From positions 186,001-250,000 of IMG/VR virus record IMGVR_UViG_3300034073_003340: DNA of 64,000 nt; one strand, 5' to 3'. The translations under genes were made by a program, and so were the position numbers. The notes beneath the pieces were generated by a model that was given only the letters and a program-made list of their open reading frames with translations, did not search any database and was not told where the DNA came from. Shown here piece after piece: positions 10,632 to 25,075 of this stretch (positions within the stretch are counted from its first letter, which is position 1; each line of letters starts with the position of its first letter).

Positions 10632-11789
10632 TTAGTTGCGGAGGATTACTACCAAGTCGCCTGACCAAGAGGGAGGGTTATCGCCTACCACTGCCAAGTG
10701 ATCTCCATAAGCTATTACTCTATCGCCTGCCACTGGGATACTAATTGTGCCCAATAGATCACCAACCGCCCAAGTAATTGTTCCAATCACCTGACCGTTC
10801 TTCTCAATGTCGCGGGTTTGACTCACTGTGGCCGCTTGAGTTGCCTTTACCCTAGAGTTGCTTACGCTGATAGTAAAGGGTTGGAGGGCTGGGTTGAGGG
10901 CAATAGAGCTTGCGCTCGCGGGGCCTTGTCCCACATAGCCTACCGCGATACTTGAAGTGGAAGCTTTGGCGTCTAGTGCCCCTTGTAGACCCGTTACGTC
11001 CTGGATCGTGTGGGTGTGGATAGCCGGAGCCTTGCCATCAAGAGCGGTTTGGAGATTGGTTACCTGAGAGATCGCAATGGAGCCTGTGGCATCTAGTTTG
11101 AGATCCAAGGCCGCTTGTGTCGCAATGCTGATTGGTTTCTGGGCATCACTGGTATTATTGACGTTTGTGATATTGAGAAAACCTTTGACGTCCACATCTG
11201 TGAGTTCGCTGGCCTGACCTGCCCCTGGACTAGTTTTGCCCAAGATGCGGGGTCCTGCGCTCAACTGGATATCAGCAGCCACGTGACTGTGAGTGGCATT
11301 GGCTTTGAGGTCCAGAGCCGTCTGTGTGGCAGTGCTGATTGGCTTCTGGGTATCGCTAGTATTATCCACATTGCCAAGACCAACCGCTGCCTTGTTCAGT
11401 GTTTGGAAAGTTTTATCGCCTCTCCAATACTGTTGGGCCGTTCCTGCCACAATGGCATCTTCCTTGCCAGCCAGGGCCGCTACTGCCGCATTACTCAGGG
11501 GTTTCAGAGCGTCACTGGTATTATTGACGTTTTCCAGTTCCAAAAAGGTTTTGGCCTGAGTGGAGGTCAAGTTTTGAATAGGGGCATCAGTGGAGCCAGT
11601 GGATCTACCCAATAGACCTGCGCCGGGACTTGTTAGACCGCTGGTAGTAATATTACCTTGATCCACCTTGTTGTCTTGATTCAAGTAAAGTTCATCAAAG
11701 TTATTGTTTACTTTAATGAACGCATCGCGCAGGCCCTCGCCGTCACCAGCATTGGCCGCGCTACCAATATTGATAGTTTGCTTTGCCAT
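10632..11789 (-). CDS. Baseplate/tail-fibre protein with T4 gp9/gp10-like N-terminus and tail repeats
   Basis: MAKQTINIGSAANAGDGEGLRDAFIKVNNNFDELY; three NV(N/D)NTSD..KP.S.A..AL repeats; HTHTIQDVTGLQGALDAKA phage-tail repeats. Confidence 0.8.
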   Translation of the reverse strand: MAKQTINIGSAANAGDGEGLRDAFIKVNNNFDELYLNQDNKVDQGNITTSGLTSPGAGLLGRSTGSTDAPIQNLTSTQAKTFLELENVNNTSDALKPLSNAAVAALAGKEDAIVAGTAQQYWRGDKTFQTLNKAAVGLGNVDNTSDTQKPISTATQTALDLKANATHSHVAADIQLSAGPRILGKTSPGAGQASELTDVDVKGFLNITNVNNTSDAQKPISIATQAALDLKLDATGSIAISQVTNLQTALDGKAPAIHTHTIQDVTGLQGALDAKASTSSIAVGYVGQGPASASSIALNPALQPFTISVSNSRVKATQAATVSQTRDIEKNGQVIGTITWAVGDLLGTISIPVAGDRVIAYGDHLAVVGDNPPSWSGDLVVILRN

Positions 11790-11812
11790 TTTATTCTCCT
11801 CGCCCTGGGGCC

Positions 11813-14800
11813 TTAACTGATACTTCCGTCTGTTAGAGCAAGATTGCTCGAGACATTGATCTGGTTGTTATCTGCGGTGTTGGTTACTACACTGCTCTGG
11901 TTGTCATCTAAATCACCTGACAAGTCCCAAATGTTAGCTGCCACTTTGGTCAAAGTAACATTGGAAAATCTCGTGCGAGTAAAACGACTTGTTGGCGTAT
12001 TGATGATCACGCTGGGTCCTGGCACGATTTCTGTTTGACCGGAACCAATCTGAGTGATGTGAATCTGGACACCAATATTTAATTGAACCGTTGAGTTATT
12101 GGGAACCACTACTTGATTGGGTCCAGTAAAAGACCTACGAATATAGGATCCAGCATCACTGGTTTGGAGAGTATAGGAAGCCGTGGTAACTGGAGTTACT
12201 TTCATACCAGCAGCATCAACTTGCTTTTGACCTACCCAAGTTCTAGTTCTACTAAAGTAGCGGAACAAGTAAAAGGTCAGACCATTTGGCACAATATTGG
12301 GGGCCGTGCTGGAGATCCAAGTAATAGGTCCACCCTGCGTTACTTGAAAGTTGACTTGACGATTACCAACTGAATCTTGCTTTACAGCAATCAGGAGTTC
12401 ACTATAAAGTTCACCGCTAGTATTCAGCGGTCCAGGAGCATAGGAGGTTGGCTCTGGTGTCTTGATCGTCAGAGTAGCTGAGCCGGTCAAGTTTACCAAG
12501 AAAGTATTGCCTGATTTTGGATCAATGACACCGTCTGGTACAACTGAGTTGTCTTCAGTATAGCGGAGAAGAATACCACTGGCATTGTAGTGACCAACAA
12601 AGTTTCCTTCGTCTGGCTGGACATCATAGGCCAAACGTGGTCCACTGATAAAGTCCTGATCACTGCGTCTCTTTACACGAGTAAAGGACCATTCACAGTT
12701 TCCTTCTTTGTAGATTTTGCTGAACTCACCATTGTAGTAAAAGTTTACGTTGGTAAGTTCCAATCTATTTTCTGCTCCGCCAGTATTGGCATCCGCAATA
12801 CTGTAGAGACCCACAGTATAGTCTCGGATGGTATCAGGCTGTTGAACGGTGACCTGAACCCAGGGAGTTTTGAGGCTTTCACCTGCGTTATTGGGATCAT
12901 CAATTGGATTACCCTGTGGATCAAGTAATAGGGTCTCGACGTTGTTTCCTTCGTCGTCCTGATTATTCAATAGAGTAACACCGGGATCATCTTCAAACGC
13001 GTCATCTCCCGTAGTGGTTAGAAACTTGGGTCGTCCACCTTCCCAAAGGGGAAGAGATGGGTTATTGATATTCACGCTGTAGTTTTCTGGAATAATGGAT
13101 CCAACATTTTCCATTATCAAAACACCACCATTGTGTTCAATACCTTTGAGTAATGGGGCACCAGAAACCAAAGTAAAGCTTTCGGGACTCAACTGAAGAC
13201 CCGTCCAACCATTTTCAGGAAGACCGCAGTTTTGGAAAACAACACGATTTCCATCCGCAATAGTCGAGTTGTCAATTTTACCCTGAATAGTACAGTTGAA
13301 GAAATTGACATCACCGCCAAGCTGACCATTCAAAGACATAACGGTCAAATCACTCAGAGGACCAGGTCCTCTCAAAAAGGAACAGTCCTTGAAAGTCGCT
13401 TTGCCAACACCACCTACAATCGCAAAAGTAGGCTGAAATATTGAACTTGGTTGATCACTAGTATCAATGGTGATTTTGCTCATGAGCAGTGAATCAACAT
13501 TGAATAGTATTTGGACGTTTCCTTTGATTACTGAATTTGTGGAACCAAAGAAACCCTCAATGGCAAGATTTCTCTTGTTTTGAATATCAACATTTTCCTG
13601 ATATGTTCCACCCAGAAGCATTATGGTATAGGTGGTCAGCAAATCTCCATTGGGGATTTCACTCAACGCGCGATTTATGGTCAGGTAGGGAGAGTTCAGC
13701 GACCCGTTGCCCGTGGTATCATTGCCATTCTTACCAACAAAAATCGTGTTTTGGATCGTCTGAAAGAACTGCTGAACCGAAGACCATACTAGTGTATTAC
13801 TTGGACCCTGTGTTAGAAACTGGCCAGTGGTGCCAGCGGTGGACGGGAAAAGCAGTCCATTTAGGGTCAAAGAGGGCGATTGTAGGGCCACCGCTGGTGC
13901 TTGTAGAGCCAAGCTGGTTCCTGTGCCACCATCTAGTGTGATGCCCGTCTGTGAAACCCTGATAGAGCTGGAAGGAGCAATCGCATGGCTTTCAATGAAG
14001 ACACCATTATTACCAGAAGTGGTAATTGTAAAACCCTGAACGTCCAGATCTCCACCCAGTTGTGGAGTTTCATCAACCACAATTTCAATCAAATTGTTGC
14101 GCAACTGAGCAACTGTCAATCGCTTTGGTTGATTATCACCAGAGGACAAGAAGATGAACTGGTCAGTGTTGGTGACAATTGGCTCGGCGTCCAATTTGCC
14201 AATATCCAGATTGACAGTTGGCGCTTCACCTGTTCCAGTGACCGTTATACCAATTCCACCAGTTACTCCGCTGACACTTCCTGCACCAACGGGTTGCCAG
14301 GATAGATTGGATCCTTGTGCCACCAGGGCAAATGCTCCAGCGCCGCCAGGAGGTGAAAACGCAATTGACTGATTGTTGGAATCACCCACAATAATGGATC
14401 CCTGATTCAGGGTGTGACTCAAAAGACCATAAGGAATTATTTTGGTTCCAGTGGCAATCAATCGACCATTTTGATCAAAGGCAAAGGTTGGAAACACCAA
14501 GTTGCCAGAACCGGTACCAATATTGGTTCCTTGGATTGGAACAGTGATTCCACTCTGATGATCAATATACCAGTCAATAGAGTGTTGAATAGCTTCATGG
14601 GCAGTCAAGCGACCCTTGGCATCAAATGAAAGTCGGAAGTCACCAAGATCACTGTTATAGGTTACTGGGCCCTGGATTGTGTTTGATAGAGTGAAATTTA
14701 TTTCCAATGTTGGATCAGCAGCGCCAACGACTACCGCATTGTCAAATCTATCACTCTGACCCGCGGCATCTCCAACAAAACTCAAACGAGTATTTTGGAT

Positions 14801-14941
14801 TTTCGTCAGTTCATCACTGGCTTGGAACAGCGCCTGTTGAGTCGCATTGGTATTGTCCCTAAACCCCTGTGATGAATTATTGACACCAGGGGTTGGGAAC
14901 GTGACATTCAGGCTATTGGCTCTATTGCGAACGTCGCTCAT
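11813..14941 (-). CDS. Large tail fibre/tailspike-like structural protein
   Basis: N-terminal FPTPGVNNSSQGFRDN coiled segment; IFVGKNGNDTTGNGSLNSPYLTINRAL beta-helix entry motif; C-terminal YTLQTSDAG...IGVQIHITQIGSGQ...LTKVAANIWDLSGDL fibre domain. Confidence 0.75.
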   Translation of the reverse strand: MSDVRNRANSLNVTFPTPGVNNSSQGFRDNTNATQQALFQASDELTKIQNTRLSFVGDAAGQSDRFDNAVVVGAADPTLEINFTLSNTIQGPVTYNSDLGDFRLSFDAKGRLTAHEAIQHSIDWYIDHQSGITVPIQGTNIGTGSGNLVFPTFAFDQNGRLIATGTKIIPYGLLSHTLNQGSIIVGDSNNQSIAFSPPGGAGAFALVAQGSNLSWQPVGAGSVSGVTGGIGITVTGTGEAPTVNLDIGKLDAEPIVTNTDQFIFLSSGDNQPKRLTVAQLRNNLIEIVVDETPQLGGDLDVQGFTITTSGNNGVFIESHAIAPSSSIRVSQTGITLDGGTGTSLALQAPAVALQSPSLTLNGLLFPSTAGTTGQFLTQGPSNTLVWSSVQQFFQTIQNTIFVGKNGNDTTGNGSLNSPYLTINRALSEIPNGDLLTTYTIMLLGGTYQENVDIQNKRNLAIEGFFGSTNSVIKGNVQILFNVDSLLMSKITIDTSDQPSSIFQPTFAIVGGVGKATFKDCSFLRGPGPLSDLTVMSLNGQLGGDVNFFNCTIQGKIDNSTIADGNRVVFQNCGLPENGWTGLQLSPESFTLVSGAPLLKGIEHNGGVLIMENVGSIIPENYSVNINNPSLPLWEGGRPKFLTTTGDDAFEDDPGVTLLNNQDDEGNNVETLLLDPQGNPIDDPNNAGESLKTPWVQVTVQQPDTIRDYTVGLYSIADANTGGAENRLELTNVNFYYNGEFSKIYKEGNCEWSFTRVKRRSDQDFISGPRLAYDVQPDEGNFVGHYNASGILLRYTEDNSVVPDGVIDPKSGNTFLVNLTGSATLTIKTPEPTSYAPGPLNTSGELYSELLIAVKQDSVGNRQVNFQVTQGGPITWISSTAPNIVPNGLTFYLFRYFSRTRTWVGQKQVDAAGMKVTPVTTASYTLQTSDAGSYIRRSFTGPNQVVVPNNSTVQLNIGVQIHITQIGSGQTEIVPGPSVIINTPTSRFTRTRFSNVTLTKVAANIWDLSGDLDDNQSSVVTNTADNNQINVSSNLALTDGSIS

Positions 14942-14953
14942 GCGATCTCCCTT

Positions 14954-17158
14954 TTATTTGTCTCCCGGCGGAAACTTGTAGTATTTACTCTCAGACTGGA
15001 GACTGGTATCAAAAGTCGTAAAGGCAACTGTTGGTGTATCCAAGTTGTCAGGACCGTCAAAAGTTGTAATTTCTGGGAATCCAAATTCAGTTCCATCAAA
15101 AGTAGTTGAAGCAAAACCATCACTAATGAGGAGATACCTATCCACTTCAATAGTGGTTCCCTGAAGATCATCATTAATACCAGCGGTGTCTAGAGCTCTC
15201 ACAATAGCAGGACCGCTTCCTGCTCTCACATGAGCTAATTCAATAGCACATTGGTACCCCAGAATAGTGTCTGGACGTCCTCGCTCTTGTTCACTTATCA
15301 TCCAAAGAGGCAATCCTTCACGACCAGAAATGCCATAACCAGGAAGAGCTCCTGGTAATCTATCGTTGCGATTGATAAGGTCAGATCGCAGGTTCTTTAT
15401 ACTATTGGGATAGTAATTACTTGTGCCTTCCAAGAGGTTCCATTTGGGAATCGCAACAGGTGTCTGACCTGGATTATAACGATTTAGAGGCTCCTCTTGT
15501 CCAAGGGTGTTGAATCCACCTGCCCCTTCCATGGGGTCAAGTATTCCCAAATAAATCACATCGTAGAGATGTACTCCTTCAGGGCTACGTGCTCTGGCCG
15601 TTTGAACTTTACCAATTCTCAACTTAGTTGGATGATGATAGTCTTTGAGGCGATCAATTAGATCACCTGTCTGATAGTTGATACCGTTGGTTAGTAGAAT
15701 TCTATACTGGCGATTTTTTCCAAAATATTGGTCAATTTCTCTATAGAGTTGATCTCTTCCAAGCACAGTCAGTCGGTCTGATGCTAGGGCGCCAGCATTA
15801 TTGACATATCTTATGATTTTGATTTCAGTTCCAGCTGCTGGTATGGAACCAGGAGGAAATATAATAAAATCTTCACGCAACTCAGTAATTCTGGAAATTG
15901 TTCCTCTGTAAATTTGATTATTCAAAAATACATCCACGGCATCACCAAGTCGGCCTCTTGGAACAAGGAACTTTGAATCTGTTCCATTTCCAATATAGAC
16001 TCTCTGACTCACCGAGTAATCAGGTCTTGGCTCTGGTAGAGTTCCCCATACCCATTTGGCTATTTTTTGACGTGCCGGTCCAGGAACATTGAATTGGAGA
16101 CTGGTAACTGAATCAGCAGCAAAAATCGATCTAATGGTAATGGAAAAGCTTCGCTCGCTGGCAATTGCTGACGGACGAACTTCCCCTGTTTCATTATTGA
16201 CGAAAACCACTCTGGCCTCAACAATAAAATCAAAAGTTCTAGTAACCGTCACGTATGGGCATCGACCAATTATAAGACCGGACGATGGATCCAAGAGTAA
16301 GCCTTCTGGTAATGGACGACTACCAGGTGTAATGGTATAGTTGATGACTTGCGATTCAGTAGAATTGCCAGATGCTACTTGGTATTGCGGAACAGCCCTT
16401 ACTCCAAAGTGACTGGGATAGGTCTCAAATGTAGACCCCAAGGATCCCGCTGGAGTTTCCCAGCGAACCACATCGGATAGTCGGGCGTCCAGGACAATAT
16501 CTTGCCCAATTGTCAGCTTGTAGACCTTCTCTGACGTTCTAGGAGATCCCTCTCCGCGAGGATTACTTTGAAGGTCATCCGGGTCTCGAGCATAGACTCT
16601 AAAATAGTAATCACCTGGAACATTTCCAGTAATGGTCGGGGATCCAACAATTCTACCAAATTGGTCAACTTCAAGACCAATAGGCAAACCAGACTGGGAG
16701 CCTGCCGGTCCCTTGTAACCAACCGCCTTGAATTCAAGTGGATCTTGATCTGGGTTGACAATATCCAATTGGATTACAACATTGGATCCTCGATTTACTA
16801 ATCCCAAGTCTTGAATACCAGATGGTGAAGACCAGCTTTGTTCTTCATCGCTCAAATCAACAATAAACCTAAAACTTCTGTCGTAGGTTCTATTGGAAGA
16901 TCGGAGGAATACTCTAAAGACTACTGGATAGCTTTCTTGATCTTTTGGTAATGATCTAACGGTGCCCAGTATTCTCAGAGTTCCATTATTGTAGAATAGT
17001 CCAGGAGGCAATTGGCCGCCAATGAGTTCCAAACGATCCAAATCATTTCTGGCATCTGGAGAAATTTCAAGGCTAATAGAAGCCTGGTCACCACGGCGCC
17101 AAGGTTGTCCATTATTCAATAGATTTCCAGAAGGTGGCGAGAACCAAACAGCAACCAT
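14954..17158 (-). CDS. Virion structural protein with putative Ig-like (He_PIG-type) repeats
   Basis: Three W..P.GSLG...LPxGL...G.I.G...F.V repeats; large C-terminal domain; AGGAGG SD. Confidence 0.75.
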   Translation of the reverse strand: MVAVWFSPPSGNLLNNGQPWRRGDQASISLEISPDARNDLDRLELIGGQLPPGLFYNNGTLRILGTVRSLPKDQESYPVVFRVFLRSSNRTYDRSFRFIVDLSDEEQSWSSPSGIQDLGLVNRGSNVVIQLDIVNPDQDPLEFKAVGYKGPAGSQSGLPIGLEVDQFGRIVGSPTITGNVPGDYYFRVYARDPDDLQSNPRGEGSPRTSEKVYKLTIGQDIVLDARLSDVVRWETPAGSLGSTFETYPSHFGVRAVPQYQVASGNSTESQVINYTITPGSRPLPEGLLLDPSSGLIIGRCPYVTVTRTFDFIVEARVVFVNNETGEVRPSAIASERSFSITIRSIFAADSVTSLQFNVPGPARQKIAKWVWGTLPEPRPDYSVSQRVYIGNGTDSKFLVPRGRLGDAVDVFLNNQIYRGTISRITELREDFIIFPPGSIPAAGTEIKIIRYVNNAGALASDRLTVLGRDQLYREIDQYFGKNRQYRILLTNGINYQTGDLIDRLKDYHHPTKLRIGKVQTARARSPEGVHLYDVIYLGILDPMEGAGGFNTLGQEEPLNRYNPGQTPVAIPKWNLLEGTSNYYPNSIKNLRSDLINRNDRLPGALPGYGISGREGLPLWMISEQERGRPDTILGYQCAIELAHVRAGSGPAIVRALDTAGINDDLQGTTIEVDRYLLISDGFASTTFDGTEFGFPEITTFDGPDNLDTPTVAFTTFDTSLQSESKYYKFPPGDK
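14982..14987 (-). promoter_or_regulatory. TAAATA late-promoter-like box
   Basis: GTAAATAC about 40 nt upstream of the 14941 ATG. Confidence 0.45.
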
Positions 17159-17227: not shown

Positions 17228-18463
17228 ATGGGAATTAGATTCAAAGGCCGTTTTATACCACAGGGGGCTCTCAAGTTTGCCAATGTCCCTCCTGCTGCTC
17301 CAGTATTCATTACTGATCCCAGCATTTCACCAACAACTGGTATCTCTGGTGAGACTTTGTTTACTGGAAATGATGGTGTATTCACCAATGGCGTTGTTAC
17401 CTCCAGACAATGGTTACTCAACAATATTGTGGTAGCCTCGGGAAATACAGTAACTCCTCTTCTTCCAGGAACATTAGTCTATAGAGTTACTGTTGTTGGC
17501 AACGGCGGCACCGTTGTAGCGAATTCAGCTGCGGTCACCGTAGATCCTGCTCCTCCTCCACTATTCACCGTGGACCCCAGCATCACTCCCAGTGCTGGTA
17601 TTGTGGGTGTAACCACCTATACTGGTAACGATGGTGAATTTACTGGCGGAACTATTACCGCAAGAGATTGGTATGTGGGGACTGAATTCGTGGGTTCCGG
17701 ACCAACCAATATACCTCAAATTACTGGTAATCTGACCTATAGGGTCACGGTGGTCGGGAACGGTGGAACCACTATAGCCAATTCTGCACCTGCTAGCGTT
17801 GAACTTCCAGATCCTCCGGTATTCATTAGAACTCCAAGCGTAACACCAACTTCAGGACTCATGAATGCCACATTTACCGCTGATCCTGGTGAATGGACTG
17901 GTGCTACTTCGGTGACAAGAGAGTGGTTGGTAAACAACAGAGTATTGATTGGGTCGAATGGTTTGACTGTTATCCCAATGAAGGTTGGGCAGTTGGTCTA
18001 TAGAGTGACTTTGTCTAACGCGGCTGGAACAATAGTGGCAACTTCCACTCCAGTAACCGTTAATGTCAATCCAGCCATTGCTCAGCCGCCAACCTGGATT
18101 ACTGGTTCCGGTTACTTTGGTAGCTTTGAAGAAGGTTCTGAGTTCTCTGAACTATTCAACGCAACTGATCCCAATGGTGGTCCTCTGGAATATAGTATTG
18201 TCAGCGGAACATTGCCTCCTGGACTTAGCTTGAATATTTCAACTGGTGAGTTATTTGGAACCATTGGAGCAGTTGAAGAAACCACAAACTTTACATTTAC
18301 CCTTAGGGTAATGGATGAAACCAATCTCACATCTGATCGCCAGTTTGAGATCCAGGTTCAGAACGTCAAGAGCGACGTCTTCTGGGATACCCCAGAAGGT
18401 TCACTTGGTGAACCTAGCGCAGGCTCACTATTCTCAACCAAACTAGCAGCTAGGTCGGTATAA
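17228..18463 (+). CDS. Ig-like repeat virion protein A
   Basis: Three P.F...PS.TP..G......G..T.....W...RVT...GT..A.S repeats, one complete He_PIG-like domain, then ends in a partial one; GGAGG SD before ATG 17228. Confidence 0.8.
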   Translation: MGIRFKGRFIPQGALKFANVPPAAPVFITDPSISPTTGISGETLFTGNDGVFTNGVVTSRQWLLNNIVVASGNTVTPLLPGTLVYRVTVVGNGGTVVANSAAVTVDPAPPPLFTVDPSITPSAGIVGVTTYTGNDGEFTGGTITARDWYVGTEFVGSGPTNIPQITGNLTYRVTVVGNGGTTIANSAPASVELPDPPVFIRTPSVTPTSGLMNATFTADPGEWTGATSVTREWLVNNRVLIGSNGLTVIPMKVGQLVYRVTLSNAAGTIVATSTPVTVNVNPAIAQPPTWITGSGYFGSFEEGSEFSELFNATDPNGGPLEYSIVSGTLPPGLSLNISTGELFGTIGAVEETTNFTFTLRVMDETNLTSDRQFEIQVQNVKSDVFWDTPEGSLGEPSAGSLFSTKLAARSV

Positions 18464-19587
18464 TGACAGAAATCAAATATGAAATCATTAGCGGATCTCT
18501 TCCAGTAAATGTCACGTTGAATGAAGACACTGGAGAGATTATTGGTGATATTGACTTCGCCAACGTTGGTCTAGGACCAGAATGGGTAAGCCCTCCTGCT
18601 GGTAAGCTTGGAGACTTCCTTGAAGGTGATTCCGTCAACATTACCTTCGACGCGAGATATGGGTCCAATGACGAACTTGCTCTAATGGGAGTCGTCAACA
18701 ATGGAACCTTTCTTCCAAGAGGTTTGGTCTTTGATCCTGATACTGGAGTCCTTTCTGGAATCTGTGCTGACCTTTTAGCTGAAGAAGCAATTGGTAATGT
18801 GGATCCCCCAATCTGGCAGACTAGATTTGGTACTCTGGCAATGTATGACGAAGGGGTAAATGCGAACGTTTCAGTAGCCGCTACGGCCCAGGCTGGAAAG
18901 AGCCTTGCTCGATATGCTATTGTGAGTGGCGGGCTTCCTTGGGGCCTTACGCTTGATTTTCAGACGGGAGCAATTACCGGTCTCACGGCTGACCTCAAGA
19001 GCCCAGGTGTAACAATTGAAGTGCCAAAACTTCCTGCCCCAGTATTCGTTCATCCCGCAGGTAATATTGCGACCTATAATGAGGGAGAAACTTTCTCTGG
19101 ATTATTTGTCAATGCTACCCCAGCGGTTGATCGTCAGATGGTCAAATATGTGATCACCAGAGGATTTTTGCCTCGAGGTGTCATCCTCAACACGGTATCC
19201 GGAGAGATTTCAGGAACCGCTGTTGAGATGTTAGGCATAGAGGAGCCACCATTCTTCTTTACTGAGCTTTATCCAACTTTCTCATCAGAAGTTCTGGTAG
19301 ACAGCGTGAGCCAAACATCATCTAATCTTGGTTCATATGCCCGAGGAACGACCGTGTCTGCTCAGTTTGCCGCAACCCCAACGGGTTCTAGAACTATTAT
19401 GACTTATAGTTTGGAATCTGGTGGTCTTCCATATGGTCTTACACTTTCTTCCACTGGACTGATCAGCGGAACAATAAGTAATCAAGCAACGAATAGTGCG
19501 CCATCTGGCACTTACAACTTTACCGTTAGGGTAACAGATAACCAGTATGGTTTTGCTACTCGATCTTTTAACATTACTGTTCTCTAA
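18463..19587 (+). CDS. He_PIG-like repeat virion protein B
   Basis: Five Y....G.LP.GL.L...TG.I.G repeats; TAATG-coupled to gene A. Confidence 0.85.
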   Translation: MTEIKYEIISGSLPVNVTLNEDTGEIIGDIDFANVGLGPEWVSPPAGKLGDFLEGDSVNITFDARYGSNDELALMGVVNNGTFLPRGLVFDPDTGVLSGICADLLAEEAIGNVDPPIWQTRFGTLAMYDEGVNANVSVAATAQAGKSLARYAIVSGGLPWGLTLDFQTGAITGLTADLKSPGVTIEVPKLPAPVFVHPAGNIATYNEGETFSGLFVNATPAVDRQMVKYVITRGFLPRGVILNTVSGEISGTAVEMLGIEEPPFFFTELYPTFSSEVLVDSVSQTSSNLGSYARGTTVSAQFAATPTGSRTIMTYSLESGGLPYGLTLSSTGLISGTISNQATNSAPSGTYNFTVRVTDNQYGFATRSFNITVL

Positions 19588-19596
19588 GGAGTAATC

Positions 19597-20892
19597 ATGG
19601 CAGTTTTTCCTTTTACTATTAGAGCTACTGACTCTGAAGGCTCCTTTGCTGACCGTCAGTTCTCTATCACTGTTCGCAATAGCCGAGTTGAGCGCTTTAT
19701 GGCGGTAACAGGTACTGACGCGTATACCAGCGCCGACGGTCAGTCCTGGGTTTTTAGAGCCGGTATGGGCGGTTCGTCATGCACCTATGGAAACAATATG
19801 TGGCTGATTGGTCCTGTCAGTATTGGTGGTCTACGTCGTTCAACAGACGGTGTGAACTATACATATATTGATCCGGCCTCCATGACCTTTACCCACCTGA
19901 ACGATCCAAGAACTGGAACCAATGCTGCTGGTAACCCAAGCATGTTTCCTAACAGAATCAGCAAGATTCGTTTCTACAATGGCAGATTCTGGTTTTGGCA
20001 GAGCCAGACCTCAAACACGAGCAATAATAGCAGACAATCTCTGAGAGTTTGGTATTCAGAAAACGGTATTGATTGGTTTGGTCGTACGCTTCTTCATAAC
20101 AACAATAGTGCGACTAACTTTGCCAATATTATGACCAACTCAGGTGAGTATATTACTGAAGATAACGGCACTCTGTTCATTGGTTGTGCTGTTGGTCTTG
20201 GTTCAAACACCGATAACCTCCTACATCCTGATTTTGGTACTGGCGGCCCTCCACTAGGTTTCCAATCAACTGACAACGGAAATACTTGGACTCCGGTTCG
20301 TCGTGCCGGTCTTGCTAACTCTGTGGTTTTGTCTGCTCCCAACGTTTCACTCACCAGAGTAAATGGCTTTTACCTTGCCTACGGTATGAATACTAACTTT
20401 GGTTTTGGTAATGGCTCTGCCACCTATGCGTATAGCACTGACGGCAGTAACTGGACACAGGGCGACTTCTCTGTTGGAACTGGTCAGACCAATTCGGCCA
20501 TAACAACCCTTTTGAACGGTACTCGTCCTAACGGTTTCATCTATGCCAATGGACTGATTTATGTCTCTATGGCCGCTACCGCTGGCACCTCTCCCGGTTA
20601 TCTGCCGATGCTGGTAAGTTCTGATGGTATTAGCTGGACTTTGAGAACAAATATTATTGATTTCGGTCGCACAACTGGAACTGGTGCTAACTCAGGCGAC
20701 TGGGGTAGAGGAGATATCATTTATCGTAATGGTATTTTCCTATTGGCTCACCAGGGCGGCGGCTCCGCCGACGTTATCGGGGCCAACGCACTCAGTGGCG
20801 GTCTTCGCTTCTCAACCAACGGTTCTACTTGGACTACGGTAAACCGCTTTGACAATACTGCTACTCTTTTCCTAGACGCAGCAATGATTTAA
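19597..20892 (+). CDS. Asp-box/BNR-type beta-propeller protein C (putative receptor-binding)
   Basis: Seven S.DG..W-type boxes (YTSADGQSW, STDGVNY, YSENGIDW, STDNGNTW, YSTDGSNW, VSSDGISW, FSTNGSTW); N-terminus is an Ig-type FTIRATD...DRQFSITV hairpin. Confidence 0.75.
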   Translation: MAVFPFTIRATDSEGSFADRQFSITVRNSRVERFMAVTGTDAYTSADGQSWVFRAGMGGSSCTYGNNMWLIGPVSIGGLRRSTDGVNYTYIDPASMTFTHLNDPRTGTNAAGNPSMFPNRISKIRFYNGRFWFWQSQTSNTSNNSRQSLRVWYSENGIDWFGRTLLHNNNSATNFANIMTNSGEYITEDNGTLFIGCAVGLGSNTDNLLHPDFGTGGPPLGFQSTDNGNTWTPVRRAGLANSVVLSAPNVSLTRVNGFYLAYGMNTNFGFGNGSATYAYSTDGSNWTQGDFSVGTGQTNSAITTLLNGTRPNGFIYANGLIYVSMAATAGTSPGYLPMLVSSDGISWTLRTNIIDFGRTTGTGANSGDWGRGDIIYRNGIFLLAHQGGGSADVIGANALSGGLRFSTNGSTWTTVNRFDNTATLFLDAAMI

Positions 20893-20897
20893 AGACA

Positions 20898-20928
20898 AAT
20901 GAGCCGGGGTCTATGACCCCGGCTCATT
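20898..20928. terminator. Bidirectional hairpin terminator between convergent genes
   Basis: aatgagccggggtc-tat-gaccccggctcatt, 14-bp perfect stem; tctctgaggg x2 follows. Confidence 0.8.
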
Positions 20929-22977: not shown

Positions 22978-23232
22978 TTAATCGTCGAACTCACTAGGTT
23001 TAGCTTTTTGGAGCACGGGTTCTCCTGCCTTGAGGATCTTCCGTGCTTTTGTGAGTGAACAGTCCTCGCCGCACAAGGTACAGTTGGGTTCTGTGAAGTC
23101 AGCTTTACCACTGTCGATCTCTGCGACTTGATCCCTGAGACTCTCAAAGACCATTAGGGCATCGTCAGTGCCAGCTAGCGTATCAGAGCAGATGGGGCAT
23201 TGGCGCTTGAATCGTGTGTCTTTTACACTCAT
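22978..23232 (-). CDS. Small Zn-finger-like protein
   Basis: CPIC...CTLC pairs. Confidence 0.7.
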   Translation of the reverse strand: MSVKDTRFKRQCPICSDTLAGTDDALMVFESLRDQVAEIDSGKADFTEPNCTLCGEDCSLTKARKILKAGEPVLQKAKPSEFDD

Positions 23233-25016
23233 CAGACTTCCTTCCAACCCTGCCCTTCGAGGTGAGCCTTGACTTCGTCCCAAGTGCCTTCGCTGCTGTA
23301 GCTGAAGCCAGTCTCAGGATCCTCGCCCTTGCGCTTGAAGACATCGTGCGTGATGTCCTCAACATTCCACTCGCCGCCCCACGTAGCCATGAGCTCCTCA
23401 AGCATCGCACTGGGCAGGTCGATGTTGTTGATCAGCTTGCCGTCACGGTCCAGATAGCCCATGAGGATGCGGATACCAGTGAAATCTCGGCGCACGAATT
23501 GGAAACCCAGGCCAGTAATCTGCGCATCGCGCGGGCGGTAGCGGTCATACCAGTGAATATCCAAGGGAAGGTTACTCTTGTTGAGCTCGTAGGTTTCCCA
23601 TACCTCGCGACAGAAGTCAGCCCACTGATCACCACTGTCAGCCTTGATGCGCGCTTCGGCATTGCCCGGAGGTGGAGCCGGAGGGGCCACAGCAGCCGGT
23701 GGAGCCGGAAGCGGGGCAAAGCTGCCCGCACGAGCATTCACCGCCGCAGGACCCATCATAGGGGCTGGGTGACCTGGGTTATGAGGCGGAAAGGAAGGAA
23801 GTGGAGTGGGTTGCGGAACCGGCAGATCATACGGTGGAGGATACGATGCCTCGTCATTGATGATTTCCAGATTCTCTCCTTCATCCTCGTCGTCGATATC
23901 CAGCATTTCGCAAAGTTCTGCGTGGAGATCTTCATCCGTGTAGGTAAAGTAATCGGGCAGGACCGTAGTGCCGTCGTCGAAATATTCATACAGAAGCCAG
24001 ATTGCGTGGCTGCGTTCAAGCGTGACCCAGATGCCGGCCTGAAGCTCTCGCTTGATCTTTTTGTCATCTTCCCATGTGGGATCACACTGGTCGAGCCCCT
24101 TCAATCCAGCGGCTCGTTGCGTTATGAATGCGGCCTGAACCGCAGGTTGGAGATTGGCCAATTCGGGCCATTGGGTGGCCATCAGAGGCAAAGCTGCCTG
24201 CATACCGGGAGCATTGAAGATGCCGCTGGGCGGAAGTGCAGGGACGTTGATTGCGTTCATGTTGGGGATGGGACCCACGGGGGCAACTGGCAGCATTCCA
24301 GTAGGTGTGCCGGGCGGCATGGGCACACCGTTGCCAGGCATCGGAATACCCAGCATGGCGCCGATCTGGCTCATGAGATTGCCCACTGGAGGTGTGGAAG
24401 CCGCTGCGGCTGCGCTCAGGGCACCAGGAGCAGGCTTCGCAACGCCGGGAGGATTCCAACTGGAATCCAGGATCGGTGGAAGAGGTGGATTGACGGGAGG
24501 GGTCGGCGTCTGCGGCGCCGGTCCGTTGCTGGTGTCATTGAGGAAGTCGCTGAGTGACTGGTCGTGCTTGAAACCATATTTGGCCAGCGCGATGTGAACC
24601 TTCAGAACGTTGTCGTAGGGTGACACGAAATCGTTTTCTTGTGCTTCATCGGCGAGGTCGTCGGGCAGACAGTGGAAGAATTGTATGATCCACTGCTGAT
24701 GCTGGTCGAAGACATAACCAGTGCGGCGCCAGCGATCCTGTGGTTCGAACACATAGCTGATGCCAGTGGTAAGACCGTTCATCGTGTCACCGTGCTCGCA
24801 GATGCCATAGACCCATTGATCACGTTCATAGACGCCGCAGTCTTCGTCGTCACCGATTGTATAAACGGTTCGATTCAGCTTGCTGTTGAAGAACTCCCTG
24901 ACATTCTCGCCATTGAGGGCAAACTTCTGAACTCGCTTCCAGTCTTTTTCTGTGGTCGGGACATTGGAAGTGTTGAAGTAGTGAACGATGCGTTCCTTGA
25001 TTTCTGCGCTACTCAT
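23232..25016 (-). CDS. Large hypothetical protein with two Pro-rich linkers
   Basis: Long ORF with GC-rich codons; GGAGATCGAT RBS before ATG 25016. Confidence 0.85.
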   Translation of the reverse strand: MSSAEIKERIVHYFNTSNVPTTEKDWKRVQKFALNGENVREFFNSKLNRTVYTIGDDEDCGVYERDQWVYGICEHGDTMNGLTTGISYVFEPQDRWRRTGYVFDQHQQWIIQFFHCLPDDLADEAQENDFVSPYDNVLKVHIALAKYGFKHDQSLSDFLNDTSNGPAPQTPTPPVNPPLPPILDSSWNPPGVAKPAPGALSAAAAASTPPVGNLMSQIGAMLGIPMPGNGVPMPPGTPTGMLPVAPVGPIPNMNAINVPALPPSGIFNAPGMQAALPLMATQWPELANLQPAVQAAFITQRAAGLKGLDQCDPTWEDDKKIKRELQAGIWVTLERSHAIWLLYEYFDDGTTVLPDYFTYTDEDLHAELCEMLDIDDEDEGENLEIINDEASYPPPYDLPVPQPTPLPSFPPHNPGHPAPMMGPAAVNARAGSFAPLPAPPAAVAPPAPPPGNAEARIKADSGDQWADFCREVWETYELNKSNLPLDIHWYDRYRPRDAQITGLGFQFVRRDFTGIRILMGYLDRDGKLINNIDLPSAMLEELMATWGGEWNVEDITHDVFKRKGEDPETGFSYSSEGTWDEVKAHLEGQGWKEV

Positions 25017-25075
25017 ATCGATCTCCATGAGGATTTGAGTCTTGTGTAGCACCTTGTCCAAAAAGGACAAGGTAA

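Follow-up and report, generated by a model that had tools for sequence, protein, structure and literature searches.

Is the break of a single immunoglobulin-like domain over three neighbouring genes of a giant bacteriophage real, and does it reflect the way in which a virion fibre is assembled? The question was raised by an earlier note on a stretch of 64,000 nucleotides (the window) of the record IMGVR_UViG_3300034073_003340, which described three genes, here called A, B and C, and proposed a branched fibre built by donor-strand complementation. In the present analysis every sequence statement of this note was confirmed, whereas its interpretation is only partly supported.

Three separate genes encode pieces of one domain

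Genes A (17228-18463, 411 aa), B (18463-19587, 374 aa) and C (19597-20892, 431 aa) lie on the plus strand. The A/B junction reads GTA TAA TG, so that a TAATG stop-start overlap at 18461-18465, compatible with translational coupling, links the two genes. B lies in the -1 frame relative to A, and a TAG at 18451-18453 is found in the B frame, 12 nt before its ATG. In addition to what the note had described, B and C lie in the same frame, separated by TAA plus 9 nt.

The translated pieces were compared separately with the Pfam He_PIG profile (PF05345). A (E = 4.8e-12, 46.6 bits) and B (E = 7.7e-27, 94 bits, 4 matched stretches) both exceed the gathering score of 24. In the 422-aa open reading frame of A, residues 310-388 match profile positions 12-95, which corresponds to a full domain. 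In B, residues 8-29 match positions 43-64, repeats 2 to 4 match only about 14-74 and repeat 5 matches 13-95, whereas residues 3-26 of C match 72-95. With a 97-position family HMM of the complete cadherin-like domain, the last ~30 residues of A, the first ~35 of B and the first ~28 of C map to positions 3-31, 39-65 and 72-97, respectively (4-31 for the A tail of the window). A complete seven-strand domain within one chain is thus lacking for 4 of the 6 domain units: three units of B are truncated and one is divided among the A tail, the B head and possibly the C head.

A starts with a motif, MGIRF.GR..P.G...F (17228-17278), which also heads the other A proteins, single-chain A-B relatives and giant He_PIG proteins; the MGIRF start is conserved in all relatives and its role as a virion anchor is inferred. 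It is followed by three Ig-like (PKD-like) repeats of about 87 aa (17288-18076), which share 31-45 identical residues per pair in self-alignment and give a weak K319L-like_PKD hit. The number of these repeats varies among relatives, in which A proteins are 146-411 aa long. The complete cadherin-like domain of A (18080-18364) covers family HMM positions 2-97 (E = 7.5e-32), and the A tail (18374-18457) contains only strands A-B of a further domain. The equivalent tails of 13 of 14 other A proteins map to positions 3-32; that of Atu_ph07 gave no significant match.

The B head (18475-18555) corresponds to strands C-D-E of the domain begun in A (family HMM 39-65, Pfam 43-64). Three truncated domains with strands A-E and without F-G then follow: T2 (18583-18771; family HMM 7-66, Pfam 16-64), T3 (18802-18993; 3-66 and 17-74) and T4 (19039-19227; 5-66 and 14-65). 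The terminal domain (19303-19581; 6-95 and 13-95) is complete, with its own F-G hairpin. The AF2 model of B has a pLDDT of 77.5, with about 90 for the terminal domain and 70-89 for the truncated domains as a monomer, and leaves the C-strand segment of the latter unpaired. Foldseek with this model retrieved cadherins and dystroglycan. The only PDB sequence hit was SraP, which carries cadherin-like modules; the fold and the tandem arrangement are shared with such proteins, but the known examples have complete seven-strand domains and no solved structure contains the truncated A-E unit.

The N-terminal hairpin of C (19603-19680) is homologous to strands F-G (family HMM 72-97, Pfam 72-95), and AF2 predicts strands at residues 2-11 and 17-26. 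The rest of C (19696-20889) contains 7-8 Asp-box motifs and is predicted as a BNR-type beta-propeller with a pTM of 0.80. Foldseek hits were sortilin Vps10p, GH74 and sialidases, as well as propellers found within phage fibre proteins. The Pfam family BNR_2 (PF13088) is recorded for 6 homologues, whereas C of the window gives no Pfam hit at E<=1 apart from a chance one. TM-scores to sialidases are only 0.27-0.41 and no enzymatic claim is made. In 37 homologues of C, of 374-432 aa, the hairpin is at or near the N-terminus.

The split is conserved among related jumbo phages

The same split recurs at the same positions in more than 15 independent cassettes from Atu_ph07-like jumbo phages at 30-50% identity, which is far beyond chance. 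Two cultured phages are included, with Atu_ph07 gp239/gp240/gp241 and Phosso gp681/680/679 as true homologues at about 30-35% identity (measured for B and C). These are annotated only as hypothetical or 'EF hand/PKD domain' proteins, and the split domain had not been noted in the literature that could be searched. None of 13 A/B junctions contains an XXXYYYZ slippery heptamer and 10 of them are TAATG overlaps. Stops in the B frame lie 6-54 nt before the ATG, and only 6-15 nt before it in 7 junctions. B is in the -1 frame in all cassettes. The frame relation of B and C observed here holds in 8 of the 15 B/C junctions listed and differs in the other 7.

In the loci designated L007 and L009, B copies exist without an upstream A, and in locus L022 a 27-nt spacer separates the two halves of a complete split domain. 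Another lineage (locus L023) cuts the domain at a different loop. A profile search of 1.8 billion proteins was dominated by giant He_PIG proteins but yielded single-chain relatives (proteins P0065, P0073, P0074, P0088 and P0124) with the A-type N-terminus, then full domains, 7-12 truncated domains and one full domain, the first truncated domain being contiguous. Megablast of the region against GenBank phages found nothing, PHROGs gave no family for A, B or C, and a back-translated search with the B alignment added no new loci.

Column identity is 0.89 in the C hairpin against 0.32 in the rest of C. Because synonymous sites are as saturated in the hairpin as elsewhere (58% against 61%), recombination or gene conversion was rejected as the cause of this conservation; the hairpin is under strong purifying selection. 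A hairpin-led C gene lay beside an array of truncated domains in every locus examined, including loci with fused A-B (L021) and loci where B has its own extra C-terminal domain (L018). On the other hand, protein P0010 has truncated repeats and is followed by a gene without a hairpin. The truncated domains keep the core hydrophobics of the full domains (mean KD 3.08 against 3.34), that is, the face which F-G covers. They also have their own signature, with Glu at position 19 in 99 of 113 and an aromatic residue (Trp49 in the signature) at position 49 in 72 of 113.

Published mass spectrometry of Atu_ph07 virions (PMC6102473, Table S5) detected all three homologues. The A homologue gp239 (15.8 kDa) peaks in gel slice 11 with other 15-20 kDa proteins, and the C homologue gp241 (43.7 kDa) peaks in the same slice as the 43.5 kDa capsid protein. 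The B homologue gp240 peaks one slice higher than expected for about 39 kDa, and gp239 peptides are also present in that slice. This shift is within the scatter of that gel but does not exclude a minor A-B fusion product.

A proposed modular fibre assembled by fold completion

The reading we favour, as somewhat more likely than not, is that A, B and C are separately translated virion proteins which assemble into one fibre by completing each other's cadherin-like folds. In this view, A would provide the anchor motif, the Ig-like shaft domains and strands A-B, and B would begin with strands C-D-E, the two fragments rebuilding one domain non-covalently while the TAATG overlap couples their synthesis. 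This A-B joint is well supported by the single-chain relatives, by the alternative break points and by the migration of the Atu_ph07 homologues of A and C at their own sizes. The shaft of B would then be an array of domains lacking F-G, and C a propeller head, presumably the receptor-binding or glycan-binding part, whose almost invariant hairpin would insert into one or more of the open domains, possibly the A/B composite domain itself, and attach heads laterally. The separateness of the genes, the tiling of one domain model, the conservation of the split and of the hairpin, and the neighbourhood of C and truncated arrays were shown by sequence analysis, and the presence of the homologues in virions is taken from the literature; the docking of C, by contrast, is purely inferential and only indirectly supported, the binding function of the head is presumed and the anchor function of the A motif is inferred.

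The earlier note was right that the genes are separate, that a frameshift is unlikely and that C carries the hairpin missing from B. Its proposal of four incomplete sockets in B, each filled by C, is not supported by gene counts, since the number of C genes does not scale with the open domains (1 for 4, 2 for 6, 2 for 8 and 2 for 12). Its suggestion of other hairpin-tagged heads encoded elsewhere is not supported either: a degenerate DNA pattern for M..F.FTVRATD found only the C genes already known, 1-2 per locus, and none beyond tandem C copies was detected in the 64-kb window or in related genomes.

The most serious alternative, although we consider it unlikely, is that the truncated domains are a self-sufficient shaft repeat, standing alone or closed by packing in a homo-oligomeric fibre, and that the hairpin is a generic adaptor binding elsewhere, by edge-strand augmentation on a full domain, on the baseplate, or in a small beta-structure with other C chains; the A-B joint may still hold in this case. 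Single chains with 9-20 truncated domains (about 20 in protein P0063), the Glu19 and Trp49 signature, which could be an adaptation to life without F-G, the pLDDT of these domains as monomers, the C gene numbers and P0010 are compatible with this view. Against it, the hairpin is homologous to exactly the piece that the truncated domains lack, these domains keep their hydrophobic face, their C strand is left without a partner in the AF2 model, and a hairpin-led gene lay beside the array in every locus examined.

Fusion of A and B by programmed -1 frameshifting, or of B and C by read-through, would make the domain contiguous in the functional product. The conserved -1 frame, the documented addition of Ig-like extensions by frameshifting in phages (PMC5009743) and the position of gp240 would fit, but this is very unlikely given the absence of slippery heptamers, the nearby B-frame stops, the conserved ATG and TAATG, the B copies without A, the spacer of L022 and the peak of gp239 at its own size. 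Read-through of the B stop was rejected because the B/C frame relation is not conserved. Assembly error or recent pseudogenisation of one long fibre gene, for which only the existence of single-chain relatives speaks, is refuted by the conservation of the breaks in independent assemblies and in two cultured phages. Furthermore, a strain with 90% identical B and 87-88% identical C keeps both as separate proteins of the same length, no indel variants were seen at either junction in contigs of four runs, and all three proteins are detected in virions.

Relation to known systems

In chaperone-usher pili, as with strand exchange in type V pili, an Ig-like fold left incomplete in one polypeptide is completed by an N-terminal extension of another, which builds a fibre; the logic proposed here is analogous. 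There, one strand (G) is missing, a periplasmic chaperone caps the subunit and an usher catalyses exchange; here, two strands (F-G) are missing from many tandem domains of one chain, the putative donor is a hairpin, and a further domain is cut between strands B and C across two genes. No chaperone or usher was identified among the five fibre-cluster proteins scanned against Pfam, and a phage virion protein is not expected to use them. Ig-like extensions added to phage structural proteins by frameshifting (Fraser et al. 2006; reviewed in PMC5009743) also have the downstream reading frame in another frame, but here no slippery site is present, the downstream gene has its own conserved ATG and sometimes no upstream partner, and the break lies inside the domain and not before it. 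In branched receptor-binding complexes, such as G7C gp63.1/gp66, CBA120 tailspikes and the hyperbranched fibres of Klebsiella jumbo phages, variable heads with a conserved N-terminal docking module hang on another fibre protein and tandem paralogous head genes occur. Those adaptors are folded domains docking onto folded domains, whereas here the adaptor would be a 26-residue hairpin homologous to the missing part of its partner's fold; no gp10-like adaptor was recognised, as A, B and C matched no PHROG or Pfam family beyond He_PIG. Literature searches for strand complementation in phage fibres returned nothing.

If the inference holds, this would be a new way of joining virion fibre proteins, by natural fragment complementation of an Ig-like fold with a short universal hairpin tag on interchangeable heads. 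It would explain how these phages combine and duplicate head genes (cassette orders ABC-ABC, A-B-C-B-C and A-B-C-C), assign a role to a widespread, structurally unsolved truncated He_PIG repeat, and offer a small natural tag-and-socket pair for protein engineering. In its most far-reaching form, which remains doubtful but is not excluded, jumbo phages would build bottle-brush fibres by a chaperone-free, hairpin-in-socket donor-strand complementation, with one domain assembled from up to three polypeptides (strands A-B from A, C-E from B and F-G from C) and every truncated domain acting as a socket for an exchangeable propeller head carrying a universal 26-residue tag, as a natural SpyTag-like plug system for swapping or multiplying receptor-binding heads.

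Signals around gene C

An AAGGAG ribosome-binding site (19586-19591, plus strand) was read directly from the sequence 5 nt before the ATG of C. Downstream of C, a 14-bp palindromic terminator-like hairpin (20898-20928) closes the A-B-C unit and lies between convergent genes.

Organization of the A-B-C genes

Three co-directional genes, A (17228-18463), B (18463-19587) and C (19597-20892), are located between a divergent intergenic region and a 14-bp palindromic terminator-like hairpin at 20898-20928. The real start of A is the conserved MGIRF. A and B overlap as GTA TAA TG and B is in the -1 frame, with a TAG in that frame 12 nt before its ATG. C follows the TAA of B after 9 nt and is preceded by an AAGGAG site. 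The window belongs to the IMG/VR contig IMGVR_UViG_3300034073_003340, a 435,856-bp jumbo phage, and the runs that hold it come from subsurface and soil metagenomes.

On the opposite strand (10632-17158, - strand), a divergently transcribed fibre cluster encodes a 734-aa protein with three full He_PIG domains, a 1042-aa protein with a pectinesterase-like beta-helix and weak PHROG tail-fibre hits, and a 385-aa protein whose counterpart in the related locus L018 carries a phage-tail-repeat (PTR) hit. The whole six-gene block, including the divergent He_PIG protein and the pectinesterase-like fibre protein, is syntenic with L018. Further along, at 23214-25070, long ORFs overlap on both strands (447 aa on +, 612 aa on -). 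The - strand product has long Pro/Ala-rich stretches and the + ORF is probably spurious.

Domain composition

Pfam analysis revealed the He_PIG (cadherin-like Ig) domain in A and B. When the pieces were scanned separately, B residues 8-29 matched profile positions 43-64, B repeats 2-4 matched only about 14-74, B repeat 5 and the last full domain of A matched 13-95, and C residues 3-26 matched 72-95. A 97-position HMM was then built from the complete domains of this family, and the A tail aligned to positions 4-31, the B head to 39-65 and the C head to 72-97. The three fragments therefore tile one domain, with breaks in the B-C and E-F loops. In addition, A has three PKD-like repeats of about 87 aa and C has 7-8 Asp boxes.

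The N-terminal motif of A, MGI+[FY].G... (window 17228-17278; P0149, P0105, P0095 and P0112 among proteins of the profile search described below), also heads single-chain A-B relatives and giant He_PIG proteins of 2,700-3,755 aa. It may be a shared virion-anchoring peptide, possibly another small beta-hairpin.

Conservation of the split

In a tblastn search against GenBank phages, only Sinorhizobium phage Phosso and Agrobacterium phage Atu_ph07 were found, at 32-35% identity, and both have the same three genes cut at the same places. IMG/VR and metagenome loci (designated by L numbers) added many more cassettes, with the gene orders ABC, ABC-ABC, A-B-C-B-C (L007, L009) and A-B-C-C (L011, L024). 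In all of them the A tail, B head and C head map to the same HMM ranges, the one exception being the Atu_ph07 A tail, which gave no significant match. Assembly error is excluded, and contigs of four runs also show no indel at either junction.

Absence of recoding signals

None of 13 A/B junctions has an XXXYYYZ heptamer in the stretch where the frame of B is open. Ten of them are TAATG, and B-frame stops lie 6-54 nt upstream of the ATG. The second B copies in L007 and L009 follow a C gene and not an A gene, and in locus L022 the two halves of a split domain are separated by a 27-nt spacer. B and C share a frame in 8 of 15 junctions and differ in 7. Ig extensions added by frameshifting are known in phages (PMC5009743), but the features of that mechanism are not found here. 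In Phosso (L001 466-541), an annotated tRNA-Pyl(CTA), an amber-suppressor-type tRNA, lies about 4 kb upstream of the cassette, but it is not relevant to these junctions, which end in TGA or TAA, and the window itself has no tRNA genes.

Single-chain relatives of A and B

As Rosetta-stone evidence for the A-B joint, a profile search of 1.8 billion representatives highlighted the single-chain proteins P0065, P0073, P0074, P0088 and P0124, of 1211-1376 aa, which have the A-type N-terminal motif followed by several full domains, then 7-12 truncated domains and one final full domain. Their first truncated domain is contiguous. In L022, the upstream protein ends with strands A-B (HMM 2-33) and the next protein starts with strands C-G (HMM 38-95), whereas in locus L023 the downstream protein starts at strand B (HMM 21-66, E=4e-8) and the upstream tails match only weakly. 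The same joint has therefore been cut at different loops in different lineages, which is what one expects if the fragments reassemble.

The N-terminal hairpin of C

The 37 homologues of C are 374-432 aa in length and all carry the hairpin at or near the N-terminus; one has a short N-terminal extension, probably a mis-called start. Mean pairwise column identity is 0.89 for residues 1-35 and 0.32 for the rest of the protein. Among 17 C genes whose DNA sequence was compared, identical-residue codons differ in 58% of pairs in the hairpin and 61% elsewhere. Conservation is therefore at the protein level and is not due to recent recombination.

Hairpin-led C genes lie beside the truncated-domain array in every locus examined, including L021, where A and B are fused and two C genes are present, L022, L024, and L018, where B carries an extra C-terminal domain of its own. 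C therefore does not simply continue the end of B. A strict DNA pattern for the hairpin start found no further copies elsewhere in those genomes.

Structure predictions

AF2 modelling of B (16-sequence alignment) gave a pLDDT of 77.5 and a pTM of 0.32. The full domain scores above 90 and the truncated ones 70-89, and in each truncated domain only the A, B, D and E strands are called whereas the C-strand segment is left unpaired. A Foldseek search with the B model returned cadherins, dystroglycan and SraP, and no PDB sequence matches the truncated unit. AF2 modelling of C (44 sequences) gave a pTM of 0.80, with a predicted hairpin at residues 2-11 and 17-26, a short linker and a propeller. A Foldseek search with this model returned Asp-box propellers and, in viruses, Atu_ph07 gp241 and propellers within several phage tail-fibre-type proteins. 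The C proteins end in a conserved ...D[VI]AAM motif (window 20875-20889 and all C homologues), which AF2 makes a last strand (427-430), probably the velcro closure of the propeller with strand 34-37.

Comparison of truncated and full domains

In 113 truncated and 44 full domains, the consensus over positions 5-65 is almost the same and the core positions stay hydrophobic, with a mean KD of 3.08 against 3.34. The face that strands F-G cover is therefore retained. However, the truncated domains (e.g. window 18583-19227) have their own marks, a Glu at HMM position 19 in 99 of 113 (against 9 of 44 full domains) and an aromatic residue at position 49, in LPWGL, in 72 of 113 (against 11 of 44). As Atu_ph07 gp240 is annotated 'EF hand/PKD', a Ca2+ site between domains is a possibility.

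Detection of the homologues in virions

In the Atu_ph07 proteome (PMC6102473, Table S5), gp239 (the A homologue, 15.8 kDa) peaks in gel slice 11 with other 15-20 kDa proteins, gp240 (the B homologue) is found in slices 5-6 and gp241 (the C homologue, 43.7 kDa) peaks in slice 6 together with the 43.5 kDa capsid protein. The three are structural proteins, and the A and C homologues migrate at their own sizes as separate polypeptides, whereas the B homologue peaks one slice higher than expected for its size.

Proposed assembly of the fibre

The splitting of Ig-like domains across these three genes, as described in the earlier note, is confirmed and generalised to other phages. The interpretation given there, in which the genes encode a fibre assembled by completion of open domains, is supported in part. 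The split, its conservation and the presence of the three homologues in virions are shown by sequence comparison and published proteomics, whereas the contacts between the proteins are inferred. The joining of A and B by fragment complementation is well supported and we consider it likely. The docking of the C hairpin into open domains is the most economical reading, but it remains an inference that we regard as about as likely as not, and the four heads per B proposed in the note should be taken as a conjecture. The main alternative is that the truncated domains are closed by other means and that the hairpin binds elsewhere. Functionally, the proposed arrangement resembles donor-strand complementation in pili and the adaptor logic of branched phage receptor-binding complexes, but it is not a member of either system.

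Variation among paralogues and strains

Paralogous cassettes were also compared, although this evidence is weak because it is confounded by duplication age. Where each B has its own A (L005, L008), the A tails are 30-41% identical and the B heads 42-43%, whereas the B heads are 71-75% identical where two B copies share one A (L007, L009). The hairpins are 73-97% identical throughout.

In one metagenome (run X4), a 157-nt unitig (window 19460-19616) covers the end of B and the start of C with a depth of about 774 against about 100 for neighbouring contigs, so this short stretch is shared nearly identically by several co-occurring strains or phages. In the same run, a related strain carries a compensating 1-nt deletion and 1-nt insertion 3 nt apart within C (window 20514-20517), by which the frame is restored.
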